A stretch of 64,000 nucleotides of DNA, taken from positions 155,445 to 219,444 of the IMG/VR virus record IMGVR_UViG_3300024503_000485. One strand, given 5' to 3'. Below the pieces are notes generated by a model that ran no database searches, was not told the origin of the DNA, and worked only from the letters and a program-made list of their open reading frames with translations. Positions 30,627-41,691 of this stretch are shown one piece after another. The stretch's first letter is position 1. Each line of letters begins with the position of its first letter. Both the position numbers and the translations under genes were made by a program.

Positions 30627-31060
30627 TTATTATTTCTTTTTACACTCTGTATGTCCAAAGTCCCTGTTTGTAAAGGACCACCGTAATCACCGTCAACAAC
30701 AACATTAGCACATAGTTCACGGAACCAACGATCGACAATTTCTTCGTCCAAATCACCGTCAGCACCATAACCTTCTTGCTTTAATTGTAGCACAAAATGT
30801 TCATTCCAGTCAAGTTCAAAAAAACCGTTACGAACATTGTCTTTGTTTATATGTGTATTTAACACGCCTACCCATGGTTCTTTCTTTCGAGTAGCACGAT
30901 CTTTTGGACTCAATTTAGCCAATTCTTGTTCTTGAGCAATTTCTTTTAGGCTATTTTCGGCTTCTTCTTTTAATTTGTTAGCCTGTTCAAGTGCTAATCT
31001 TGCTTCTTCAATGTTGGCTTCGATTTTATCTAAACCAAATAATTTTTTAATAAATTTCAT
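30623..31060 (-). CDS. Hypothetical protein
   Basis: Start MKFIKK is coupled to the queE stop (TAATG). Confidence 0.65.
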   Translation of the reverse strand: MKFIKKLFGLDKIEANIEEARLALEQANKLKEEAENSLKEIAQEQELAKLSPKDRATRKKEPWVGVLNTHINKDNVRNGFFELDWNEHFVLQLKQEGYGADGDLDEEIVDRWFRELCANVVVDGDYGGPLQTGTLDIQSVKRNNK

Positions 31061-31923
31061 TAAGTTCCCCACTCATTTTTAAATAATGGTACTTGTAGTC
31101 TATCACTATAGCGCAAGCCATTTTTCATCGCTAGTTCAGCGACCCTACGATTATTAAGAGTATAAACAGACTCCACCCCACCAACTGGCATAAGATATAC
31201 GGGTCCTGTAAACCCTTCGGCTCTGTAAATGTCTGCTGTTTCAATTGCTTCTTCTGCATCTTCTTCTGTCGCTACTACAAACTTAAGGTAAGTGTAGCCA
31301 ACCTCCTCATATTCACATACAATGTCTGGACGAATAGCTTCACTGCGTTCTTCACCGGAACAACTTAGTTTAGCACTTACACTAAATGTAATTTCTTTAT
31401 TATATTCTGGATGCGGCATCAACCATTCGATAGAAAGAAATTCTTTAAACTCTGGCGTTAGTTTTTGAGTACCATTAGTTTCAAAGGTAATCTCTTTTAA
31501 ACCAGCCATCTTAGGATGGCGCAACAGATCTGGATAAGCACGTTGCCAACCTAGTAACGGCTCGCCGCCTGTAATGACCAAGTGTTCGTCCTGCCACTGA
31601 TTAAATGGAAGGATTTCGCAGATACGTTCTGCAATACCATCTGTTGTAAGCATAGGACTAAGATCTTTAAAACGAGGATCCCAACTAGCGTAACTATCAC
31701 AGCCTGTGCTAACAAGCGGAAGTTCTTCGTATTTTGTATAAGGTTTTCTTTCGTGCTGGATAGCAATATCTTCAACTTCTGCACTTAGTTCGCCCTTTGG
31801 CATACCAAAGCCTGCACATTTAAAGTTACAACCAAATGTACGTAAGAAAACAGAAGGCACACCCATAAAGCGTCCTTCACCTTGAATGCTATAAAATAGC
31901 TCTGCGATTTTAATTTTGCTCAT
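31060..31923 (-). CDS. queE: 7-carboxy-7-deazaguanine synthase (radical SAM)
   Basis: ELFYSIQGEG..GVPSVFLRTFGCNFKC...GCDS, VITGGEP, FETNGT, SVSAKL, YLMP, RLQV signature. Confidence 0.88.
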   Translation of the reverse strand: MSKIKIAELFYSIQGEGRFMGVPSVFLRTFGCNFKCAGFGMPKGELSAEVEDIAIQHERKPYTKYEELPLVSTGCDSYASWDPRFKDLSPMLTTDGIAERICEILPFNQWQDEHLVITGGEPLLGWQRAYPDLLRHPKMAGLKEITFETNGTQKLTPEFKEFLSIEWLMPHPEYNKEITFSVSAKLSCSGEERSEAIRPDIVCEYEEVGYTYLKFVVATEEDAEEAIETADIYRAEGFTGPVYLMPVGGVESVYTLNNRRVAELAMKNGLRYSDRLQVPLFKNEWGT

Positions 31924-32101
31924 TGTTTATTATACCTTTATATATGAAATTTGTCAAGTCCTCTTTGACCAAACTCCATGTTCCGTCTTTATTATCAATC
32001 CAATTTATAGTATCGCCTTCTTTCCAACCCATCTCATTTAGTAAATCTTGAGGCAATGGTAATATTCCATCTTCGTTAATCGTTAATGTCCAACTTTTCA
32101 A
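31910..32101 (-). CDS. AbrB/MazE-like small DNA-binding protein
   Basis: DGILPLPQDLLNEMGWKEGDTINW pattern; TTG start. Confidence 0.6.
   Translation of the reverse strand: MKSWTLTINEDGILPLPQDLLNEMGWKEGDTINWIDNKDGTWSLVKEDLTNFIYKGIINNEQN
31929..31957 (-). promoter_or_regulatory. Consensus sigma70 promoter TTGACA-N17-TATAAT for queE (probably leaderless mRNA)
   Basis: -35 at 31952-31957, -10 at 31929-31934; only 5 nt separate the -10 from the ATG. Confidence 0.8.
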
Positions 32102-32978: not shown

Positions 32979-33169
32979 TCTGGTAATGGATTAAATCGTT
33001 GAAGAAAACTTTCAATGTAACAACTCCATTCCTGACATTCTGCTATATTAGGATTGCAGTTATCTAATCGATAATACACCCAAGTATGATCATCGATTTC
33101 GGTTACACTAATAACACGAAATTTTTTTCTATCATTATAGGTACCCCAAAGTGTTCCTGCTTTAACCAT
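32975..33169 (-). CDS. Hypothetical protein
   Basis: 64-aa ORF overlapping its neighbours. Confidence 0.6.
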   Translation of the reverse strand: MVKAGTLWGTYNDRKKFRVISVTEIDDHTWVYYRLDNCNPNIAECQEWSCYIESFLQRFNPLPE

Positions 33170-33749
33170 ATTCTTTGTTCCTTAAAAATTGTGACAGCAA
33201 TTCAAAAATAACTTTATTTCCTTTTTCAGTATAATGATTAATTAAACCTCTTTCCGAACTCCAAAGTCTACTAAAATCAAAATGATTTTTTTCTATTGAT
33301 AGTTTTTTTAAAATTTCAATATGAGATAAACTTATATAAGGAATTGTTATTATACTATTAATTTCTTTTCTTAACAACCGATAAACATCTAATTGATACT
33401 CGTCGTCGTAGTGATATTTGAACCATCCTTGAGCAGTTTTTAAATTACCATCAAACAAAGAAAAATTTTCGTTTATGTCGGTTAAAATTAAATCACAATC
33501 TTTATGAAATCCAGTTTTATGAATTGGATGATTTGGAGTATGTATTCTACTAGGACTGGTATGACTAACAATTATACAATCATACAGGTGTTGGTTAATA
33601 GTTTCAATTTGTTTATATATTTTGTATTCGCCTACGCCAGCTTGAGCTACATTTGTAACTTCGTGTTCTTTAGCCAATAAATCAACCCAACCAATAGAGG
33701 CATTTGGCCACTTAGCGGCAAAACTATCACCGGCAATTAAAATTCTCAT
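33162..33749 (-). CDS. SGNH/GDSL-like hydrolase or acyltransferase
   Basis: LIAGDSF, NVAQAGVG, C-terminal NHY. Confidence 0.7.
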   Translation of the reverse strand: MRILIAGDSFAAKWPNASIGWVDLLAKEHEVTNVAQAGVGEYKIYKQIETINQHLYDCIIVSHTSPSRIHTPNHPIHKTGFHKDCDLILTDINENFSLFDGNLKTAQGWFKYHYDDEYQLDVYRLLRKEINSIITIPYISLSHIEILKKLSIEKNHFDFSRLWSSERGLINHYTEKGNKVIFELLSQFLRNKEYG

Positions 33750-34564
33750 AGTGCTTTCAACCAGGGTAGATATTTAGTAGCAATGAGAGTGTGATAATCT
33801 TTATTATAATGTTCGTTGTCTTCGATAAAATATTTTGTATGGTCAATATTTTTATCTAAAAAGAATTTTTCAACGGTCTTAGGTGCTAATGTTGTAGCTT
33901 TTAATTGTCCGTAGTAGTTATAAACATCGGGAAATTTCAATCTTTCTGTAAAATTAAAAAGATATAATTTAGCATTGTTTTCAAAACAAATTCTATCCCA
34001 GGCAAAGATTTGTAAACCAAAATCTCTTTTTTCTAAAAAAGAGTTTAATTCAAAAAATAATTTAACCTGCATATAAGTATTTTTTCTTAGATCAGGTTCT
34101 AATAATCCTTTCTCAGCAGATAAATTCATACCGGGAAATTTTGAATAATCGTCGTATGTGGGTTTATTGAATAATTGAAGTTTGTCTTTAACTACCGTAT
34201 TGTCAACGTATCTAGAAATTAAAGAATTATCACTATCACATTTTAATTTAAAATGATCTACAGGAATAACATCGTCGGATAATTCATTATCAAATCCTAT
34301 TGTAAAACGATTTAAAGGTGCTACACATAGAAATACTTCATCAATGTCGTTATATTCTTCAAACATCGATTTTAACCAGTCTGTATACACACGATTGTTT
34401 ACACCTGCCATTGCATATATAGCCGCAGGTTTGTTTAGTTCGGACGAATAAATTTCTCCGTAATTATTTTCATTCCAGTAAGAAAAACTTCCTGGACCAA
34501 TTTTTCCAGGAATACTATGGTATCCACAAGTATGACTATCTCCAATAAACAACGATCTTGACAT
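33746..34564 (-). CDS. SGNH/GDSL-like hydrolase or acyltransferase
   Basis: FIGDSHT, YAMAGVNN, DNEHY (DxxH); TAATG-coupled start. Confidence 0.7.
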   Translation of the reverse strand: MSRSLFIGDSHTCGYHSIPGKIGPGSFSYWNENNYGEIYSSELNKPAAIYAMAGVNNRVYTDWLKSMFEEYNDIDEVFLCVAPLNRFTIGFDNELSDDVIPVDHFKLKCDSDNSLISRYVDNTVVKDKLQLFNKPTYDDYSKFPGMNLSAEKGLLEPDLRKNTYMQVKLFFELNSFLEKRDFGLQIFAWDRICFENNAKLYLFNFTERLKFPDVYNYYGQLKATTLAPKTVEKFFLDKNIDHTKYFIEDNEHYNKDYHTLIATKYLPWLKAL

Positions 34565-34956
34565 TACCACTTCCTATAATTACCTCGTTCTGGAATAACG
34601 TGTCTAACCCCACCAGTGGGATCTTCCATATCGCCTGTTCGTCTTGGAATTAAATGTACATGAGGCCACGGAACCGTTTGTCCTGCTGATTGGCCATAGT
34701 TAAGACCAATATTAAACCCATCCCATTCTCCGGTGCCTACACGTTTAATTCCATCTTTAACTGCATCTTCAAAACAATCCATTAGCACATCAATAGTATT
34801 GTATTTAGGCACAAAAAGAAGATGGCCATCAGTAACAGGATACTTATCTCTAAATACTCTAACATGATAGTCTTCCTCTACAAGTTCGGTCCACGGTGCT
34901 TTTGAATCTTCAATAAAATCAGGCTCCGACGGAAATACTTTATGTTCGTGTTTCAT
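34564..34956 (-). CDS. HIT family nucleotide hydrolase
   Basis: DKYPVTDGHLL, GFNIGLN.GQSAGQTVPWPHVHLIPR. Confidence 0.9.
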   Translation of the reverse strand: MKHEHKVFPSEPDFIEDSKAPWTELVEEDYHVRVFRDKYPVTDGHLLFVPKYNTIDVLMDCFEDAVKDGIKRVGTGEWDGFNIGLNYGQSAGQTVPWPHVHLIPRRTGDMEDPTGGVRHVIPERGNYRKW

Positions 34957-35540
34957 TTTGACCACCACTCTTCCCAAGGAAAATCAACCCATACATCCTC
35001 TTCTGCTTTGTTAATTTCCATGCCAACAAAATCCATTTTTACATTACACTTACTAGCAAGATTATCAACTAAAACAGCAAATTTAACATTTTCGTTCCAA
35101 ACTTCGTTCCACGAGTCGTCTCCTGGAAAACAACTAGAGCGCCAATCATCCATAATCCAATTAAAGGTAGCGCCACTATCGTTTATATCGTCTACAATTA
35201 AAATATTTTTGTAAGTAGCCCCGTCTTCTAACAAACCACTAGCTACATCTAAAATACTTCCAATGTCGTTAGCATCGTCAATTATACGATCCTTAGTTGG
35301 AGGACCAAGTGCATCTTCTGCCATCCACATATTGCTTTCTCCACCGCTGCCATCTCTTAAACTAACATTTAAAGTCCACATTGGTACATTAAGATAATGA
35401 CTCAACAATACAGCGGGAATAAGGCCACCGCGAGTTAGGCCAACAATATAATCTGGCTTCCAATATCCTGTTGCAATATTTCTTCCAATTTTTGAAACCA
35501 ACCCTGTCATTTCATGCTGGTTGATTATGAGCTTTTTCAT
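34953..35540 (-). CDS. Type I phosphoribosyltransferase (Gpt/Hpt-like)
   Basis: GLTRGGLIPA, ILIVDDINDSGAT PRPP-binding loop, WVDFPWE. Confidence 0.88.
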   Translation of the reverse strand: MKKLIINQHEMTGLVSKIGRNIATGYWKPDYIVGLTRGGLIPAVLLSHYLNVPMWTLNVSLRDGSGGESNMWMAEDALGPPTKDRIIDDANDIGSILDVASGLLEDGATYKNILIVDDINDSGATFNWIMDDWRSSCFPGDDSWNEVWNENVKFAVLVDNLASKCNVKMDFVGMEINKAEEDVWVDFPWEEWWSK

Positions 35541-35958
35541 ATCTCTCCTTTAGATACTCTTCATGTTGTATCCATTTACCGTTAACATCAAAACCCCAAT
35601 CGCGTTGTTTAGGACCAGGCATAAAAATAGTCCAGCACTCAACACCTGGTTCTAATTCAACACGATGAAAGCTATTAGCACTACAAGTTCTAAAATGACC
35701 AGGACCTCTCCAGAATCTTCCTTCTGGAGTAGTTTCCCAGTAACCACCTTTGAGAATTAGTGTAGCATAAGGCCAAGGATGATCGTGTAAATCGTCCGGA
35801 TCACCTTTTAAGAATTTGTGTAAAAAGATATTAAATGGAAAACGATCTCTATCTTTTAGAAAAAGATAGTAACGTTCTAAATATGGTTCGTTTACTTCTC
35901 GATCCATAACGATACGTTTACGACCCATACCTTCTAAAAGATTAAGAAACCATTTCAT
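35512..35958 (-). CDS. Cupin-fold protein
   Basis: HDHPW..LKGGYWE..HRVEL..WTIF; ATGA-coupled start MKWFLN. Confidence 0.7.
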   Translation of the reverse strand: MKWFLNLLEGMGRKRIVMDREVNEPYLERYYLFLKDRDRFPFNIFLHKFLKGDPDDLHDHPWPYATLILKGGYWETTPEGRFWRGPGHFRTCSANSFHRVELEPGVECWTIFMPGPKQRDWGFDVNGKWIQHEEYLKERYEKAHNQPA

Positions 35959-36170
35959 GTGCGATCCTTTAACCATGCGTCTACTTTTGCTTCTGCTTCT
36001 TCTTGTGTAACAGCATAAGCATAGATCCAAAAACAATCATCTTTACCTTTGATATCAAAAGGAACACTACCGTTAAACAGGATTCCTTCTTCTAACATAC
36101 GTTTTACTTCAAATTTCTTTAAATTTCTTGCACGATTAATTAAATCGTTAGCCATGTCTACTGAATTCAT
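35955..36170 (-). CDS. Hypothetical protein
   Basis: 71-aa ORF with ATGA overlaps. Confidence 0.6.
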   Translation of the reverse strand: MNSVDMANDLINRARNLKKFEVKRMLEEGILFNGSVPFDIKGKDDCFWIYAYAVTQEEAEAKVDAWLKDRT

Positions 36171-36913
36171 CTTGGGGCAAACTCCTGTTGTAGTTTAATG
36201 TTATCAAAGAATTCTTTCTTTGTACCAGGATCATCTTTAAACGCACCTTTGAGTACGGTGGTCTGTGTAAGACTAGAATGTGCCATAATACCACGATTCT
36301 CACAGCATCCGTGTACTGCTTGAATATAAACGCCTAGGTCTCTAGCTTCTGTGGCTTTTTCGATCTCCCGAGCAATGTCATTAGCAAGTTCCTCCTGGAG
36401 AGTACCACGTCGGGCACACCACTGGGCGATTCTTGTGTATTTGCTGAGTCCGATGAGCTTTTGGGCAGCAATAATACCAATATAAGCAACGCCAGTAACG
36501 GGTTGGTGATGATGGCTACACATACTGCGAAGCTCGCTACGAACAACCAACATACCTTCGTAACGGTCCTCCGAGTCATTTGGAAACGCTGTTGCTGATG
36601 GTTTTGGGTCATATCTTCCTGCCATTATTTCGTTAAAATACATCTTAGCAAGGCGACGTGCTGTGCCTTTACTATTAGGATCGTTTTCACGATCAATTAG
36701 CAACCGATCAAGCACTAGTTCAAATGCCTCTGTTGCTTCGTCAATTAGTCGTTCTTTATCGCCTTCGTGTAAAAAGTCGCTGATATTATCGCCAGCCCAA
36801 AAGCGTTTGCCCTCACGTTTCATTTTAAAACGAAGATGATCGCCTAAGTATGCTTCTTCGTAACCACCGTTCCCTGCCATTGCGTCCAGGGCTGTTTCTT
36901 TTTTATCTGTCAA
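36167..36913 (-). CDS. folE: GTP cyclohydrolase I
   Basis: TARRLAKMY, SMCSHHHQP, GLSKYTR, LQEEL, HGCCENRG; TTG start with GGAG RBS. Confidence 0.93.
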   Translation of the reverse strand: MTDKKETALDAMAGNGGYEEAYLGDHLRFKMKREGKRFWAGDNISDFLHEGDKERLIDEATEAFELVLDRLLIDRENDPNSKGTARRLAKMYFNEIMAGRYDPKPSATAFPNDSEDRYEGMLVVRSELRSMCSHHHQPVTGVAYIGIIAAQKLIGLSKYTRIAQWCARRGTLQEELANDIAREIEKATEARDLGVYIQAVHGCCENRGIMAHSSLTQTTVLKGAFKDDPGTKKEFFDNIKLQQEFAPR

Positions 36914-36952: not shown

Positions 36953-38014
36953 TTATTTTAACATATCTAATAGGTTATCGCAACTAAAATAGTTTTCTTT
37001 TAGTTTTGTTACTTGTTTATTTAGGCGAGGTAGATAAGATTTATAATTTTCCATATAGTGAATAACTCGATCTACAACAGCACTTCTGTATTTTTTATAG
37101 CTGTCAAATGATTCTGTCCATTCGCTAGGATATTTGAAATCCTCCATTGACATTTCGCTGTAACTTAAACGATCTGGAACCATAGGTATTGCATCAACAA
37201 TTGCACCTTCATACCAACTAATACCTAGTGTTTCTTGCAGGTTAGCACTAAACACAAGTTTAGCTTCTCCTAAGAAATTATGATATTCGTTTTTGGTTAG
37301 TTGGCGTTCTTGACAAACAACAAATTCATACTGCGGTAACTGCTCTTTAAGATCATTAAAAATGTCAACTTGTTTTTCAGGAGCAATACGATGAGGAAAA
37401 AGGATTAGATCTTTTTTAGCCATTCCTTTATATTGCAATAAAGTATCTTCCATATACTCCATTGGCCAACCAGTACGAGTCATTTTATAATAATTTTCTG
37501 GTCCGTACATACCGCCAAACAAATTCTTATTAAACATTTCGATATGAAATTGAGTAGCAAAGTAGTTGTGGTCGAACGCATGAAAGAAACTTTTCTCAGC
37601 GTGTCTAACCCAGGGAGCATCGCCGATGAGTCTGCCTAGAAAGTCTTGAGGATCGTATGACCCAGCATGCCATAAGCCATGTGTGGTTACTGGAATGTTC
37701 AATAACTCACTCATGTACTTTAAATTTATGATACCAGGATGCCAAGCATCAGTAAACAAAAAGTGATCGCCGGGATGAACGGCTCCGTTACAAAATAAAC
37801 GCCCCATCTGCTCAACTTGGCTAGACTTATAGATATTAGTCCCGCCAAAATTAAGAAAGGCGCCAGGAGTAGTGGCACTAGGAATGTCCGTAGGACCAGA
37901 TATAATTTGAACATTGTGACCTGCCTTTCGAAGAAGTGAAGGTAAATGGGTTTTCCACTCGCCTGTATAGCGAGTTTCTACTGCTTCAAGGTCAACGAGG
38001 AAAACCCTTGCCAT
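36953..38014 (-). CDS. GT-B (GT4-like, retaining) glycosyltransferase within the 7-deazaguanine cluster
   Basis: FPHRIAPEK and FSANLQETLGISWYEG (E-x7-E) motifs; start reassigned to MARVFLV. Confidence 0.75.
   Translation of the reverse strand: MARVFLVDLEAVETRYTGEWKTHLPSLLRKAGHNVQIISGPTDIPSATTPGAFLNFGGTNIYKSSQVEQMGRLFCNGAVHPGDHFLFTDAWHPGIINLKYMSELLNIPVTTHGLWHAGSYDPQDFLGRLIGDAPWVRHAEKSFFHAFDHNYFATQFHIEMFNKNLFGGMYGPENYYKMTRTGWPMEYMEDTLLQYKGMAKKDLILFPHRIAPEKQVDIFNDLKEQLPQYEFVVCQERQLTKNEYHNFLGEAKLVFSANLQETLGISWYEGAIVDAIPMVPDRLSYSEMSMEDFKYPSEWTESFDSYKKYRSAVVDRVIHYMENYKSYLPRLNKQVTKLKENYFSCDNLLDMLK
36955..36983 (-). promoter_or_regulatory. Sigma70-type promoter TTGCGA-N17-TAAAAT upstream of folE
   Basis: Correct spacing; lies in the 3' end of the GT gene. 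Confidence 0.5.
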
Positions 38015-38288: not shown

Positions 38289-38678
38289 TTAGTACTTGAT
38301 GAAACTACCATTTTCTCCGTCTTCGGAGACCTCAATCCAAACCTCACGGTCGGGATACTTTTTGCTAATCATGTCATATAAATCATCTGACATCATTTCG
38401 CAACTTTTAAAATCTAAACTCAGTGTAGCATCTGCGTAGAGATTTTGCAACCAACGTTTAAATTGAATAAACTCAATATCGCGGTCATTGTGAGTAACAC
38501 CAATCCATACCTTAAAATGGAAGATATGTCGATGTGGATAGCCTAGGAAACTTACATCATATTCATCACCTGTTGCTAGGTTAGGATCTGTAAGTGCTGC
38601 GGGATATTTGTGCATACCTTCTTTTTGAAAGGTAACCCAAATCATTTTGTTAGGACGAATGTCTTGTTTGATAATCAT
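38289..38678 (-). CDS. QueD-like T-fold protein, DpdL-type (LxxxHRHxF)
   Basis: FLGYPHRHIFHF, DRDIEF, SCEM, VSEDGENG; lacks the canonical QueD CxxxHGH; ATGA-coupled start MIIKQ. Confidence 0.75.
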   Translation of the reverse strand: MIIKQDIRPNKMIWVTFQKEGMHKYPAALTDPNLATGDEYDVSFLGYPHRHIFHFKVWIGVTHNDRDIEFIQFKRWLQNLYADATLSLDFKSCEMMSDDLYDMISKKYPDREVWIEVSEDGENGSFIKY

Positions 38679-38890
38679 ATTTGCATCAAGCCGTCGCACA
38701 GCTCTTTAATTTCATCTCTGGTCATATTAAAGTTATAGATACTTGAAGTATCAACTTTACCTTGTTTATTTAGGCTTTCTTGCACAAAGTCTAAACTAAT
38801 AAGACCTTTTGGAGCAATACATTCGTTTGCTACAACCTTTAAACGAAAGCCGGGATTTTCATGTACAACAAATTCTTTTTTAACTCTCAT
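38675..38890 (-). CDS. Hypothetical protein
   Basis: 71-aa ORF with ATGA overlaps. Confidence 0.6.
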   Translation of the reverse strand: MRVKKEFVVHENPGFRLKVVANECIAPKGLISLDFVQESLNKQGKVDTSSIYNFNMTRDEIKELCDGLMQI

Positions 38891-39267
38891 CTTTGCAAAG
38901 CCTCCATCATAATAATTTTTGCTAAACGATCACCTAAATCTTCTGCTTCTGTAATAACATGCATAGTATTTTGATTACGATCTCTATTACGATCATAACT
39001 ACGAGTTTCTACAACGTATCCACCACTTGCTTTATAAATCTGTAGTCGCATACCTTCGGAAGATAGTTTATCTTCTTCAACATAGATACCACGATCTGCT
39101 TCGATATCGTCTTGATGGTCCATTAACCAGTTGCGAAAACGTTGTTTTAAAGTTAGTTTCATTTCTTTCTTTCTTGCCTTTTTAATTTTATTCAATCCGT
39201 AACCAGGTGTTCTTGCGATTGACTTTTGGCCAATGGCGTAGCCTGCTGATACTTGTCCAGTACTCAT
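38887..39267 (-). CDS. Hypothetical protein
   Basis: 126-aa ORF with ATGA overlaps. Confidence 0.6.
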   Translation of the reverse strand: MSTGQVSAGYAIGQKSIARTPGYGLNKIKKARKKEMKLTLKQRFRNWLMDHQDDIEADRGIYVEEDKLSSEGMRLQIYKASGGYVVETRSYDRNRDRNQNTMHVITEAEDLGDRLAKIIMMEALQR

Positions 39268-39797
39268 TTAATAATTTCATCCTTGCCATATTGATCCCAA
39301 TCTGTGAAGCGATCTCTTCCCAGAAGGTCCTGTAGGTTATGACACCATACCCCAGGATTAGTTGCTGAAAAATCTTTGTCGTCGATTTTAAGAGTGGCGT
39401 TATAACCTAGTTGATTAATATAAGGTAATTTTACACTGATCTGCGGAATAAATCTACGTTTTTCGGTAAGACCGCTTTCAAGCAATCCTTCCGTTTCGCT
39501 GACATCAAAATCAAGAGTACACCAGAAACCGTCTTCGGCGTCTAAGCATACATAGATCATATCTTCCCAAGGACGCCAGGTTTCAACATCATTGACGCCG
39601 TTAGTTTTAAAACTTTGGTTAGCACCAAAATAGATATGTTTGCAGTCGTTATTACGAGCAAGTTCCATAATAACATATGGATCATGAACGCCTACAACAA
39701 AAAGAGTTTTCATTCCAAAGGCAGGAGTCTTTTCAATTTCGACTCCTGTAAAGAAGGTGATGTTGTTTTCAACACCAGTGGAGTAATCACGTTTCAT
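39264..39797 (-). CDS. Hypothetical enzyme-like protein of the deazaguanine cluster
   Basis: 177 aa, globular; GVEIEKTP, HIYFGANQSF, KIDD..NPGVWCH. Confidence 0.65.
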   Translation of the reverse strand: MKRDYSTGVENNITFFTGVEIEKTPAFGMKTLFVVGVHDPYVIMELARNNDCKHIYFGANQSFKTNGVNDVETWRPWEDMIYVCLDAEDGFWCTLDFDVSETEGLLESGLTEKRRFIPQISVKLPYINQLGYNATLKIDDKDFSATNPGVWCHNLQDLLGRDRFTDWDQYGKDEIIK

Positions 39798-40140: not shown

Positions 40141-41691
40141 TTATTCAACTTTAAGATTATCTAATGCTTCGTCTTCTCTATCATCAGTCCAAGAAGTTTC
40201 ATCTTCTGATTCTTCATAGAACAATGTATCTGCAATGTTAGTAACACCGCCACGTAGTCGAGCACCTTCTAAGTTCTGTAAGAAACCAAGTCGTTCAGCT
40301 TCTGCAATCATAGTAAATGCTTCATCTTTAGTTTTAAGAGCAAACAATTCTTCAACAAACTGATTAAAGTACAAAATATTACGAGGTACCCATTCCGAAC
40401 GTTCATCGCTCTTATCGTTGTCTTTTACTTTACGCCAGTGTCTCCAATCTGGTTTGTAACTAGCGTATTCAATATCTGCAAGATTGTTTGCACGTTGAAC
40501 AGCACGAATATGACATTCAACATTATGACCCATCATTAGAGCATAAGCAAAACTATCCCAACTAGTTTTACCTTCCTTGCCAATCTTGTTTAACATTCCT
40601 GGAGCATAGTGGCAGATATCCGCGACCGTAAGTCTCCTACCAAAATCGGACTCGAAAGGAAAAGGTATATCGTGCCGTCCGGCAAGACCCTTATTGTCCG
40701 GGGCTTTATCCATGATAACACTGAATCGCTTATTGGTATGTTGGGCGTTAGTATATACCAATCCGTGAGCTGTTGCGATGAAAGGTGAAGCGCAGTCAAA
40801 GGAAATTGTGAAGTTTTCATTTACGTGTTTTCTAATTTGACGTTGAATGCTTGTTAAGTAACAAGCCCAATCCAGCTGTGCGGTACCCAAGAAGTGCATC
40901 CAATCCTTGCCTTCTAGCATACCATCAAAACGCATAGTGATTAGTCTGCGTAGTGTAATAGGCATTTTGCACATATTAGCACCACCCATAGCCCAACCTT
41001 CTGCGGCTTTGTCTCCATACTTGTTTGTATCGGAATATTCTTTTACACCCTGGTACCACGCTTCTGCGTTTTCCCAGTTGCTACCTTGTAAAACATTTAA
41101 TAGCTTAGTGCCGCCTTCTTTGGCACCTAAACGATTTTGAATAAAGTATTCGTTATTAAAACGAGTCTTTTCTAAACAATCTTCAAACGATTTTAATCCT
41201 GTCTTTGGGCTGTGAATGTGATCACAAGCCCATGTCGGAACGTCTAGCATCATTGACCAATCAGCAGTTACGTCTAACCAAGTTAAAATCTTTTCGCGAG
41301 TTTTATTTGCTTCAGTACCTTCAAAGTTTTGCCAGTCAAACTTAATAACACCTTTACCGATCTGATAACCGCCTGAATCTCCTAAGATCATTGTCTTTGA
41401 ACGATCACGCTGTTGAATCATAGATTCTTGCGTCATAGACTTAGTAATGTCTAATTGAGCATGACCCGCTGAATACAAGGCAAATTTATAATAAAAATAT
41501 CCTTGTTCGGGATTTAAAAAATTCATACCTTCAATACCGCGATCAAAGTCTTTAGGAATGCGGTCATCTGGAATAAATTTTTCTAAACGTTGTTTTGCAA
41601 CGTATGTAGAATAGAAAGAACTAATAGCTGGTAAGTATACCGCATAGTCCTTTTGTAGTGGTGTTAAATCAACTGGTGGTTGTTTCTTCAT
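40141..41691 (-). CDS. dpdA: TGT-fold guanine transglycosylase, DpdA-type (DNA 7-deazaguanine insertion)
   Basis: GDSGGYQ, MLDVP, VLQG, GWAMGG, HFLG, SFDC catalytic/substrate motifs in order; no CxCxxC zinc site of tRNA Tgt; clustered with folE and queE. Confidence 0.8.
   Translation of the reverse strand: MKKQPPVDLTPLQKDYAVYLPAISSFYSTYVAKQRLEKFIPDDRIPKDFDRGIEGMNFLNPEQGYFYYKFALYSAGHAQLDITKSMTQESMIQQRDRSKTMILGDSGGYQIGKGVIKFDWQNFEGTEANKTREKILTWLDVTADWSMMLDVPTWACDHIHSPKTGLKSFEDCLEKTRFNNEYFIQNRLGAKEGGTKLLNVLQGSNWENAEAWYQGVKEYSDTNKYGDKAAEGWAMGGANMCKMPITLRRLITMRFDGMLEGKDWMHFLGTAQLDWACYLTSIQRQIRKHVNENFTISFDCASPFIATAHGLVYTNAQHTNKRFSVIMDKAPDNKGLAGRHDIPFPFESDFGRRLTVADICHYAPGMLNKIGKEGKTSWDSFAYALMMGHNVECHIRAVQRANNLADIEYASYKPDWRHWRKVKDNDKSDERSEWVPRNILYFNQFVEELFALKTKDEAFTMIAEAERLGFLQNLEGARLRGGVTNIADTLFYEESEDETSWTDDREDEALDNLKVE

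Follow-up and report, generated by a model that had tools for sequence, protein, structure and literature searches.

Why does a jumbo phage keep five enzyme genes between the folE and queE genes of a 7-deazaguanine DNA modification module? The question is raised by IMG/VR virus record IMGVR_UViG_3300024503_000485, whose source is an uncultured relative of the Pseudomonas jumbo phage PA5oct. The DNA analysed here, called the window below, is the last 64 kb (positions 155,445 to 219,444) of this 219-kb record, which is estimated to be ~62% complete; positions are counted from the first letter of the window, and all open reading frames (ORFs) were read with genetic code table 11. Five minus-strand ORFs coincide exactly with the limits 33162-35958, for which a preliminary description had named a cupin, a purine-type phosphoribosyltransferase (PRT), a HIT hydrolase and two SGNH proteins. 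These identities were borne out by matches to phrog_4786, PF00156 and PF01230 and by SGNH folds. The PRT is the only one of the five that is specifically linked to the deazaguanine pathway across phage lineages. We propose, with our confidence evenly divided between this and all other readings taken together, that it recycles the guanine released by base exchange and that the other four are tenants of a hypervariable slot. The five genes are:

35512-35958, minus strand: predicted CDO-like 3-His cupin, 148 aa
34953-35540, minus strand: predicted Gpt/XPRT-like type I PRT, 195 aa; an insertion near residues 95-108 is variable
34564-34956, minus strand: predicted HIT-superfamily protein of the FHIT/Ap4A-phosphorylase-like branch, 130 aa
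33746-34564, minus strand: SGNH-1, predicted SGNH-fold esterase/acyltransferase, 272 aa; a beta-rich insertion spans roughly residues 87-160
33162-33749, minus strand: SGNH-2, predicted SGNH-fold protein, His-rich, 195 aa

A phosphoribosyltransferase recurs beside FolE and QueE

A tblastn search with the PRT retrieved similar sequences from eight isolate-phage records, all of them from phages with FolE and a QueE-like gene (the presence of these genes was checked in one record from each of three isolate-phage groups). In Synechococcus phage BUCT-ZZ01 the gene order is QueE-PRT-hypothetical gene-QueD-FolE, with DpdL and a glycosyltransferase (GT) homologue nearby. Brevundimonas phages (MaInes) display two ribonucleotide reductase (RNR) genes followed by a deoxynucleoside monophosphate (dNMP) kinase, FolE and the PRT, and in the phiST group the genome that carries the DpdL cluster also encodes the PRT. 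The association extends to PA5oct, where a diverged PRT (EST35_0321; PF00156, 6e-10) lies immediately upstream of QueE, and to two contigs binned into metagenome-assembled genomes (L093 and L116), one of which reads QueE-PRT-QueD-FolE-DpdA3-like and the other, in a phiST-like manner, QueE-PRT-FolE. These neighbourhoods support the earlier suggestion of a tie between the PRT and the 7-deazaguanine pathway. When gene neighbourhoods were compared across lineages, the PRT kept this company, whereas the cupin, the HIT protein and the SGNH pair did not. A tblastn search of PA5oct found no cupin, HIT or SGNH homologue, and megablast of the five-gene region against isolate phages gave no match.

In a quick tree of the PRTs, whose inner polytomy was left open, the window lineage, BUCT-ZZ01 and phiST/L093 fall into one well-supported clade that also takes in cellular sequences from Sphingomonadales, Flavobacteriaceae and Actinomarina. 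The sequences of MaInes, L116 and PA5oct are placed outside this clade, indicating at least two origins. The cellular members of the subfamily in Sphingomonadales and Flavobacteriaceae have no adjacent deazaguanine genes.

No PF00156 gene was found in the DpdL phages ACP17, Phosso, BUDD, Ahp1, D479 and MA9V-3 or in CP220, and a search of five control phages found no PRT in any of them. In CP220, G is fully replaced by 2'-deoxy-7-amido-7-deazaguanine (dADG) (PMC10516641). Since the PRT is missing from several DpdL phages as well as from CP220, it is optional. Its recurrence appears to be undescribed: the string 'phosphoribosyl' is absent from papers of 2019 (PMC6884629) and 2023 (PMC10516641), 'PRPP' (phosphoribosyl pyrophosphate) and 'salvage' are absent from the former, the latter makes no mention of PRT, PRPP, HIT or cupin, and our other literature searches came back blank.

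Predicted identity of the phosphoribosyltransferase

The PRT matches PF00156 with 41 bits against a cut-off of 26.3 (1.5e-10; 38.4 bits in the whole-genome scan) and stays below the NCBIfam equivalog cut-offs for both XPRT (PRK09177, 30.6 vs 138 bits) and HGPRT (TIGR01203, 29.2 vs 150). Judged by these scores, it is a relative of XPRT and HGPRT outside the curated equivalogs. In the PDB, the purine PRT 1vdm of P. horikoshii matches best (5.8e-8). The PRPP-binding loop, ILIVDDINDSGAT, displays a hydrophobic run, two acidic residues and the pattern D-[ST]-G-x-T. Among 13 phage PRTs, residues G38, G39, D117, D118, G123 and T125 do not vary, 90% retain D121, and a C-terminal W-x-x-FPWE is conserved. 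The protein is accordingly annotated here as a predicted type I purine PRT whose PRPP site is intact. Like the Gpt family (E. coli, PRK09177) and 1VDM, with which it shares the fold family, it has a VDDxxDSGxT loop for PRPP and an aromatic FPWE segment at the C-terminus; it differs from them in a loop motif of its own, (L/T)RDG...ESN, and in the variable insertion.

A 52%-identical PRT on another viral contig, L045, abuts a canonical GMP reductase (556 bits vs cut-off 397; L045:8001-9527), and neither FolE nor QueE was found in the 8 kb around the two genes. They look like a phage purine-interconversion pair, leading from guanine through GMP to IMP. The same contig also carries Hsp70 and an Rv2179c-like exoribonuclease.

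Gene content of the slot across the lineage

When IMG/VR was scanned for relatives of the PRT, 49 loci with 44-100% identity were obtained, and look-ups of SGNH homologues added more. Dereplication left 20 distinct intervals between the GT gene (gt353, see below) and queE, with the following content:

PRT: 20 of 20 variants, partly by construction, the PRT having been the query for most loci
Cupin: 19 variants
FolE: 18 variants
HIT protein: 16 variants
SGNH-1 and SGNH-2: 8 variants, always together
dCMP deaminase: 3 variants

Counted without this bias, SGNH genes occur in 3 of the 13 PRT-selected variants, and the PRT occurs in every SGNH-selected variant. GT, DpdL and QueE are constant, and folE is found on either side of the cupin-PRT pair. 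Additional tenants comprise genes for a glutathione peroxidase (GSHPx), HhH-GPD-like, WYL_2 and MazG-like proteins, a homing endonuclease and a second copy of the PRT. Four of them lie in the slot of relatives at these positions:

L122:5163-5645: glutathione peroxidase
L122:4285-4632: WYL_2
L123:8887-9135: MazG-like
L059:5295-5813: second PRT paralogue

In PA5oct, the same frame encloses two small ORFs and the PRT only. The changing gene content of the 20 intervals therefore marks this interval as a hypervariable accessory slot. The preliminary description had read the five genes together as a sign of a more elaborate modification and had named free reassortment relative to dpdA and folE as evidence to the contrary. 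Free reassortment is what the 20 intervals display for the SGNH pair, the HIT protein and the dCMP deaminase, and the cupin family is found in phages that lack FolE; a single pathway is not supported.

The surrounding 7-deazaguanine module

The slot is embedded in a replication and 7-deazaguanine module with the order DNA polymerase, TGT/DpdA-like protein p516, DpdL, GT4-like transferase, FolE, slot, QueE and FEN. Around and within the slot, the further genes are:

40141-41691, minus strand: p516, putative divergent TGT/DpdA-like protein, 516 aa, from motifs and ESM features
39264-39797, minus strand: o177, 177 aa, no family match
38289-38699, minus strand: DpdL homologue, proposed decarboxylase of 7-carboxy-7-deazaguanine (CDG), 136 aa, motif LGYPHRHIF
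36953-38014, minus strand: gt353, GT4-like glycosyltransferase, 353 aa, from Pfam matches of family members
36167-36913, minus strand: FolE (GTP cyclohydrolase I), first step of 7-deazaguanine synthesis, PF01227 1.1e-38
35955-36170, minus strand: o71, small ORF in the folE/cupin interval, 71 aa
32076-32594, minus strand: dCMP deaminase, optional slot tenant, PF00383 2e-21, phrog_174 7.8e-52
31910-32101, minus strand: AbrB/MazE-like ORF, 63 aa, overlapping the end of the dCMP deaminase gene by 26 nt
31060-31923, minus strand: QueE (CDG synthase), downstream border of the slot, phrog_2076 1.2e-52, weak Radical_SAM match

TGT-family enzymes swap a free base for guanine in a polymer and thereby release guanine. 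Four motifs are invariant in p516 (GDSGGYQ, LNVLQG, HFLGT and FDCASP), which we take to resemble the TGT signature motifs, and its ESM features point to TGT-like clusters (0.94) and DpdA (0.89). The protein is 42% identical to EST35_0316 of PA5oct. No Pfam match was obtained in a scan of 11 family members and no PDB match by sequence or by profile; comparison with DpdA3 of phiST was not significant in BLASTP and reached a probability of 4.7 in hhalign. As these homology searches were blank, the name TGT/DpdA-like derives from the motifs and the ESM features. With moderate confidence, we consider p516 a divergent DpdA-like transglycosylase, and it appears to stand for a divergent DpdA subfamily common to PA5oct, Phosso and a Vibrio jumbo phage.

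The DpdL homologue is 33% identical to CGPG_00067 of phiST (7e-16), and its motif fits the DpdL signature LxxxHRHxF (PMC10516641). On account of this motif and this similarity, a QueD identity was rejected for the small T-fold gene. The product of o177 is among the best-conserved of the module, reaching up to 89% identity where the PRT shows 53-67%. The small o71, which has no match among Pfam, PHROG and NCBIfam models, has homologues in 11 of the 20 slot variants.

QueC, QueD and a Pfam-level TGT were not found in the 219-kb record, although QueC and QueD may lie in its missing part. Searching the same record by tblastn for QueD, MazG, RNR, ThyA and other helpers yielded a dNMP kinase-like gene only, at C1:75979-76392. 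The synthase for 6-carboxytetrahydropterin (CPH4) would be supplied either by the missing 38% of the record or by the host.

Proposed guanine recycling and its closest alternatives

How might a purine PRT serve such a module? A DpdA-type transglycosylase would release free guanine from the DNA, and the PRT would combine this guanine with PRPP, yielding GMP and pyrophosphate. Conversion of GMP to GTP would refill the pool consumed by FolE, while removal of guanine would eliminate a competitor of the 7-deaza base for re-insertion. The context is consistent with such recycling, in that a TGT-like free-base enzyme is encoded and the PRT often lies beside FolE. Recycling is further favoured because the PRT is most similar to the XPRT, HGPRT and purine PRT families, because cellular members of the subfamily are not located beside deazaguanine genes, because the L045 relative is found next to a GMP reductase, and because the PRT is dispensable in many deazaguanine phages. 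Host Gpt or Hpt enzymes able to substitute for it would explain this optional status. Judged by gene context only, the PRT may use guanine, xanthine or hypoxanthine with PRPP. Between the two roles proposed earlier for the PRT, guanine salvage hence fits better, whereas an obligatory pre-replicative route disagrees with its absence from CP220 and several DpdL phages.

Several observations weigh against recycling. TubE, a purine-type PRT, is specific for CDG (PMC6112128), and the position of the PRT beside dNMP kinase and RNR in MaInes and phiST would also suit a nucleotide-level route. The assignment of p516 to DpdA is based on motifs and language-model features only, and the genes scored as absent (QueD, QueC, MazG and RNR) may sit in the missing ~38% of the record. 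The presence of the PRT in all variants partly reflects the choice of query. Full five-gene arrays all come from one lineage, so that their synteny is partly inherited rather than independent.

The first of these points leads to the alternative that survives best, in which the PRT would act like TubE or ToyH and join CDG or 7-deazaguanine to PRPP. The nucleotide would then be phosphorylated, reduced and incorporated in a pre-replicative manner, or serve another nucleotide-level use, with the HIT protein processing or policing the pool. TubE is a 194-aa enzyme from a FolE/QueD/QueE cluster (PMC6112128), and the phage PRTs are likewise embedded in FolE/QueE clusters. The dNMP kinase and RNR neighbours in MaInes and phiST, the dNMP kinase homologue of the present genome and the replacement of all G by 2'-deoxy-7-deazaguanine (dDG) in the PRT-carrying phiST group (PMC10516641) are all consistent with this route. 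However, the module encodes a TGT/DpdA-like enzyme that uses the free base, and no PRT is present in CP220 (100% dADG), MA9V-3, ACP17, Phosso or BUDD. The subfamily moreover includes cellular enzymes without deazaguanine neighbours and a copy coupled to GMP reductase, no dGTP-removing enzyme was found in the 219-kb record, and in PMC10516641 the argument is made that modification follows replication in every known case. Such activation of a deazaguanine base is possible, albeit unlikely.

Alternatively, the slot might be a landing pad for morons. None of the five genes, not even the PRT, would then be functionally tied to 7-deazaguanine, and their roles would be general ones, for instance purine salvage for nucleotide supply, redox or thiol chemistry, deacylation of lipids or polysaccharides, or counter-defence. 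The glutathione peroxidase, WYL, MazG-like, HhH-GPD-like and homing-endonuclease genes hosted by the slot are in line with this idea, as are a cupin-PRT pair (L036) and the PRT-GuaC pair of L045, both away from deazaguanine genes, and the relatives of the cupin and the HIT protein that occur in unrelated contexts in other phages. It does not readily account for the origin of all eight similar isolate records from FolE + QueE phages, for the recruitment of the PRT beside FolE/QueE at least twice, or for the lack of a PRT in the five control phages. We consider it unlikely that the PRT is such a general-purpose passenger, and guanine recycling stays our preferred reading.

Cupin and HIT protein

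The cupin matches phrog_4786, 'cysteine dioxygenase' (3.8e-39), and no Pfam or NCBIfam model. A phmmer search of the PDB aligned its HDHPW...FHRV stretch with the TM1459 cupin, a weak single-sequence match to Cupin_2 (E 0.014). The profile search of the PDB returned nothing significant, and its CDC25 rows (E 0.03) were judged spurious. ESM features point to CDO_I clusters (0.78-0.82), which is a lead only. Residues H47, H58, D59, H60, E75, H98, R99 and E101 are invariant, also in MiCath, Nazgul and Rey, and the metal-site histidines H58/H60/H98 are invariant in 14-16 sequences, including members from Pseudomonas, Burkholderia and Mycobacterium phages. The signature HDHPW...HR.E is common to the window cupin and the phrog_4786 cupins of Mycobacterium, Gordonia and Burkholderia phages. 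The protein is probably a 3-His metal-dependent oxygenase. Its conserved metal site makes the sugar-isomerase role considered earlier unlikely.

The cupin nearly always lies directly upstream of the PRT. Its occurrence with the PRT in 19 of the 20 variants and also in L036 (L036:7538-9573) suggests that the two may work together, a pairing that appears to be undescribed. In L036 the pair has an HODM_asu-like gene on one side and, on the other, tail-like genes that code for a CHAP/PAAR protein and an Ig-domain protein. A specific link between the cupin and deazaguanine was considered and rejected: the 103 phage records with a member of the family show it in contexts that have nothing to do with deazaguanine, FolE is missing from the cupin carriers Nazgul and Rey, and 25 kb separate the cupin and FolE genes of MiCath.

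The HIT protein matches PF01230 with 39.7 bits against a cut-off of 21.5 (8e-10), and in the PDB it matches the mycobacterial HIT protein 3o0m (7.6e-9), the diadenosine tetraphosphate (Ap4A) phosphorylase 3wo5 (2.3e-6) and FHIT (7.6e-5). In 14 sequences, H45, N82, N86, Q93, H99 and H101 are invariant, and a C-terminal GDxEDPxGGVRxxIPxKGNY is conserved. The HIT triad H-x-H-x-H-x-x reads W/Y-P-H-V-H-L-I, with the first His replaced and with the nucleophilic His and its neighbour (H99 and H101) kept throughout. Thus, the protein shares the nucleophilic His and the nucleotide-binding residues with FHIT/Ap4A-phosphorylase HIT proteins and differs from them by the loss of the first triad His and by the conserved GGVR...GNY extension at its C-terminus. 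It is classified as a putative nucleotide-handling enzyme of the FHIT/Ap4A-phosphorylase type. Relatives in Gordonia phages adjoin nicotinamide-riboside genes, that is, NAD-salvage settings.

The SGNH pair

Neither SGNH-1 nor SGNH-2 matches any family model of Pfam, PHROG or NCBIfam. They have hundreds of metagenomic homologues (SGNH-1 more than 150, none of them with a Pfam domain), and tblastn with both proteins against 50,697 isolate phage records found no homologue; the pair is known only from one uncultured phage lineage. AlphaFold models built from the metagenomic alignments reached a mean predicted local distance difference test (pLDDT) of 92.5 for SGNH-1 and 85.1 for SGNH-2. Foldseek listed SGNH matches, and no others, for each of the two models. 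VIA-align superimposed SGNH-1 on TesA (Z 14.3, root-mean-square deviation (rmsd) 2.9 A, 164 of 176 TesA residues) and SGNH-2 on EstL5 (Z 14.9, rmsd 3.5 A, 153 residues), and the best-scoring rows listed by both aligners are SGNH/GDSL proteins; the matches include PatB, OatA and acetylxylan esterases.

With known SGNH/GDSL hydrolases, both proteins have in common the fold, the GDS serine of block I and the histidine of block V. SGNH-1 has the full catalytic set, with S10, G54, D249 and H252 invariant and N85 present in at least 90% of 45 sequences; unlike known family members, it carries a beta-rich insertion of ~75-100 aa. In SGNH-2, the invariant residues are S9, G38, H63, H74, C85 and H172. 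It departs from the catalytic set, as block III reads SHTSPSR without Asn and no Asp stands three residues before the His, and it is further set apart by its many conserved histidines. Its model suggests that the fold is kept while the chemistry may differ. A recent paralogous origin of the two was rejected (hhalign E 0.09). Prediction of a complex between them scored 0.00, which is evidence neither way. Together, SGNH-1 and SGNH-2 would constitute a mobile two-gene esterase or acyltransferase cassette, which appears to be undescribed and has no demonstrated tie to DNA modification.

Packing of the gene array

Translational coupling downstream of folE had been put forward as a feature of the five genes. 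The overlaps are present: ATGA is shared at the o71/cupin, PRT/HIT and SGNH-1/SGNH-2 junctions, the HIT/SGNH-1 junction reads TAATG, and the cupin and PRT genes overlap by 29 nt, with AAGGAG preceding the PRT start. However, they are not special to the five, which are moreover separated from folE by o71. Five further ORFs (three small ones, the dCMP deaminase and the AbrB-like ORF) occupy the interval from SGNH-2 to queE, and a 24-gene array spans 29.6-42.0 kb with every gap at most 39 nt and most genes overlapping by 4 nt; all genes in and around the five lie on the minus strand. Because start/stop overlaps run throughout this array, coupling does not single out the five.

The only strong promoter-like sites are two perfect 12/12 matches to the sigma-70 consensus on the minus strand, each with a 17-nt spacer and each a sequence match alone. 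One lies upstream of o177 (39858-39830), the other upstream of queE (31957-31929) and within the AbrB-like ORF. No convincing terminator was found between them. A search of the window found no tRNA genes. At ~26 kb of the window, GC skew and AT skew flip sign and the coding strand changes from plus to minus.

A glycosyltransferase beside DpdL

The best hint of extra chemistry comes from outside the five genes, namely from the GT4-like gene at 36953-38014. Within the gt353 family, 6 of 13 members match PF00534 (Glycos_transf_1; best 4e-6) and 2 match PF13692, and the assignment is based on these members because a profile search of the PDB returned WlaC alone (E 0.24). A GT4-like gene adjoins DpdL in Phosso, PA5oct, ACP17, BUDD/X1 and BUCT-ZZ01 and lies at most 3 kb from it in BCSR5; in these unrelated phages, it usually also adjoins the DpdA-like gene. 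GT4-like relatives are located at:

L063:7004-8065
L065:6969-7997
L064:8363-9454
L066:5455-6612
L002:12909-14075

DpdL together with DpdA did not reconstitute dDG in E. coli, and an 'other unknown enzyme' was invoked (Hutinet et al., PMC10516641). The GT4-like transferase is a candidate for this missing factor or for further decoration of the base. Its constant position next to DpdL appears to be undescribed, as judged from the 2019 Nature Communications paper (PMC6884629) only.

Two bolder proposals, which we jointly regard as improbable, would carry further consequences. The PRT, the HIT protein and the dNMP kinase might make 7-deazaguanine nucleotides, so that the modification, or a part of it, enters during replication; if true, this would run counter to the current view, which places every 7-deazaguanine DNA modification after replication. 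In the second proposal, the GT4-like transferase and the SGNH pair might add a sugar, possibly acylated, to the inserted base, which would then be a DNA base not yet described.

Least probable is a hypermodified 7-deazaguanine made jointly by all five enzymes and the GT, for instance one that bears a sugar and an O-acyl group. In its favour, many lineages conserve the GT4-like gene beside DpdL and DpdA, HuiG attaches a sugar to the 2-amino group of a 7-deazapurine (PMC7439116), SGNH enzymes often act on O-acetyl sugars (with PatB, OatA and acetylxylan esterases among the matches), and the genes form one tightly packed array possibly driven from the consensus promoter at 39858-39830. Against it, the SGNH pair (8/20), the HIT protein (16/20) and the deaminase (dcd, 3/20) come and go around a fixed set of GT, DpdL and QueE, members of the cupin family are found in FolE-less phages, isolate phages with GT and DpdL have no SGNH homologue, and the coupling is generic to the whole array.

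Comparison with known systems

Modification of DNA by 7-deazaguanines, DpdL and variants of DpdA are already known. [quoted passage not shown] The window differs from phiST by its 516-aa TGT-like protein, which has no detectable sequence similarity to DpdA3, and from the DpdL-type clusters by the lack of QueD in the 219-kb record and by the cupin/PRT/HIT/SGNH slot between FolE and QueE.

The cluster EST35_0316-0325 of PA5oct (Wroclawvirus) displays the same frame, with DNA polymerase, a p516 homologue, GT, DpdL, PRT, QueE, a p149 homologue and RNase H/FEN. Unlike in the window, its PRT is short (144 aa) and strongly diverged, and the annotated DpdL-QueE stretch holds no FolE. PA5oct DNA is resistant to several restriction enzymes, which hints at a modified G (PMC12191111).

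In the TubE/ToyH clusters, likened here by description only, a purine-type type I PRT is encoded with genes for GTP cyclohydrolase I and CDG synthase, as in the window, and the 194-aa TubE joins CDG to PRPP (PMC6112128). These clusters, for tubercidin and toyocamycin, belong to actinomycete secondary metabolism and contain no DNA transglycosylase, and the phage PRT, in contrast to this setting, groups with cellular enzymes that lack deazaguanine neighbours.

Implications

Position in a packed operon is weak evidence of shared function, and most of the five genes are interchangeable tenants. The recurrent PRT touches on two puzzles, namely the full replacement of guanine in some phages and the failed reconstitution of dDG by DpdL and DpdA (PMC10516641). 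Its repeated recruitment beside FolE and QueE points to an accessory principle for phages with modified guanine, in which removal of guanine would pull the base exchange forward and feed the precursor pool.

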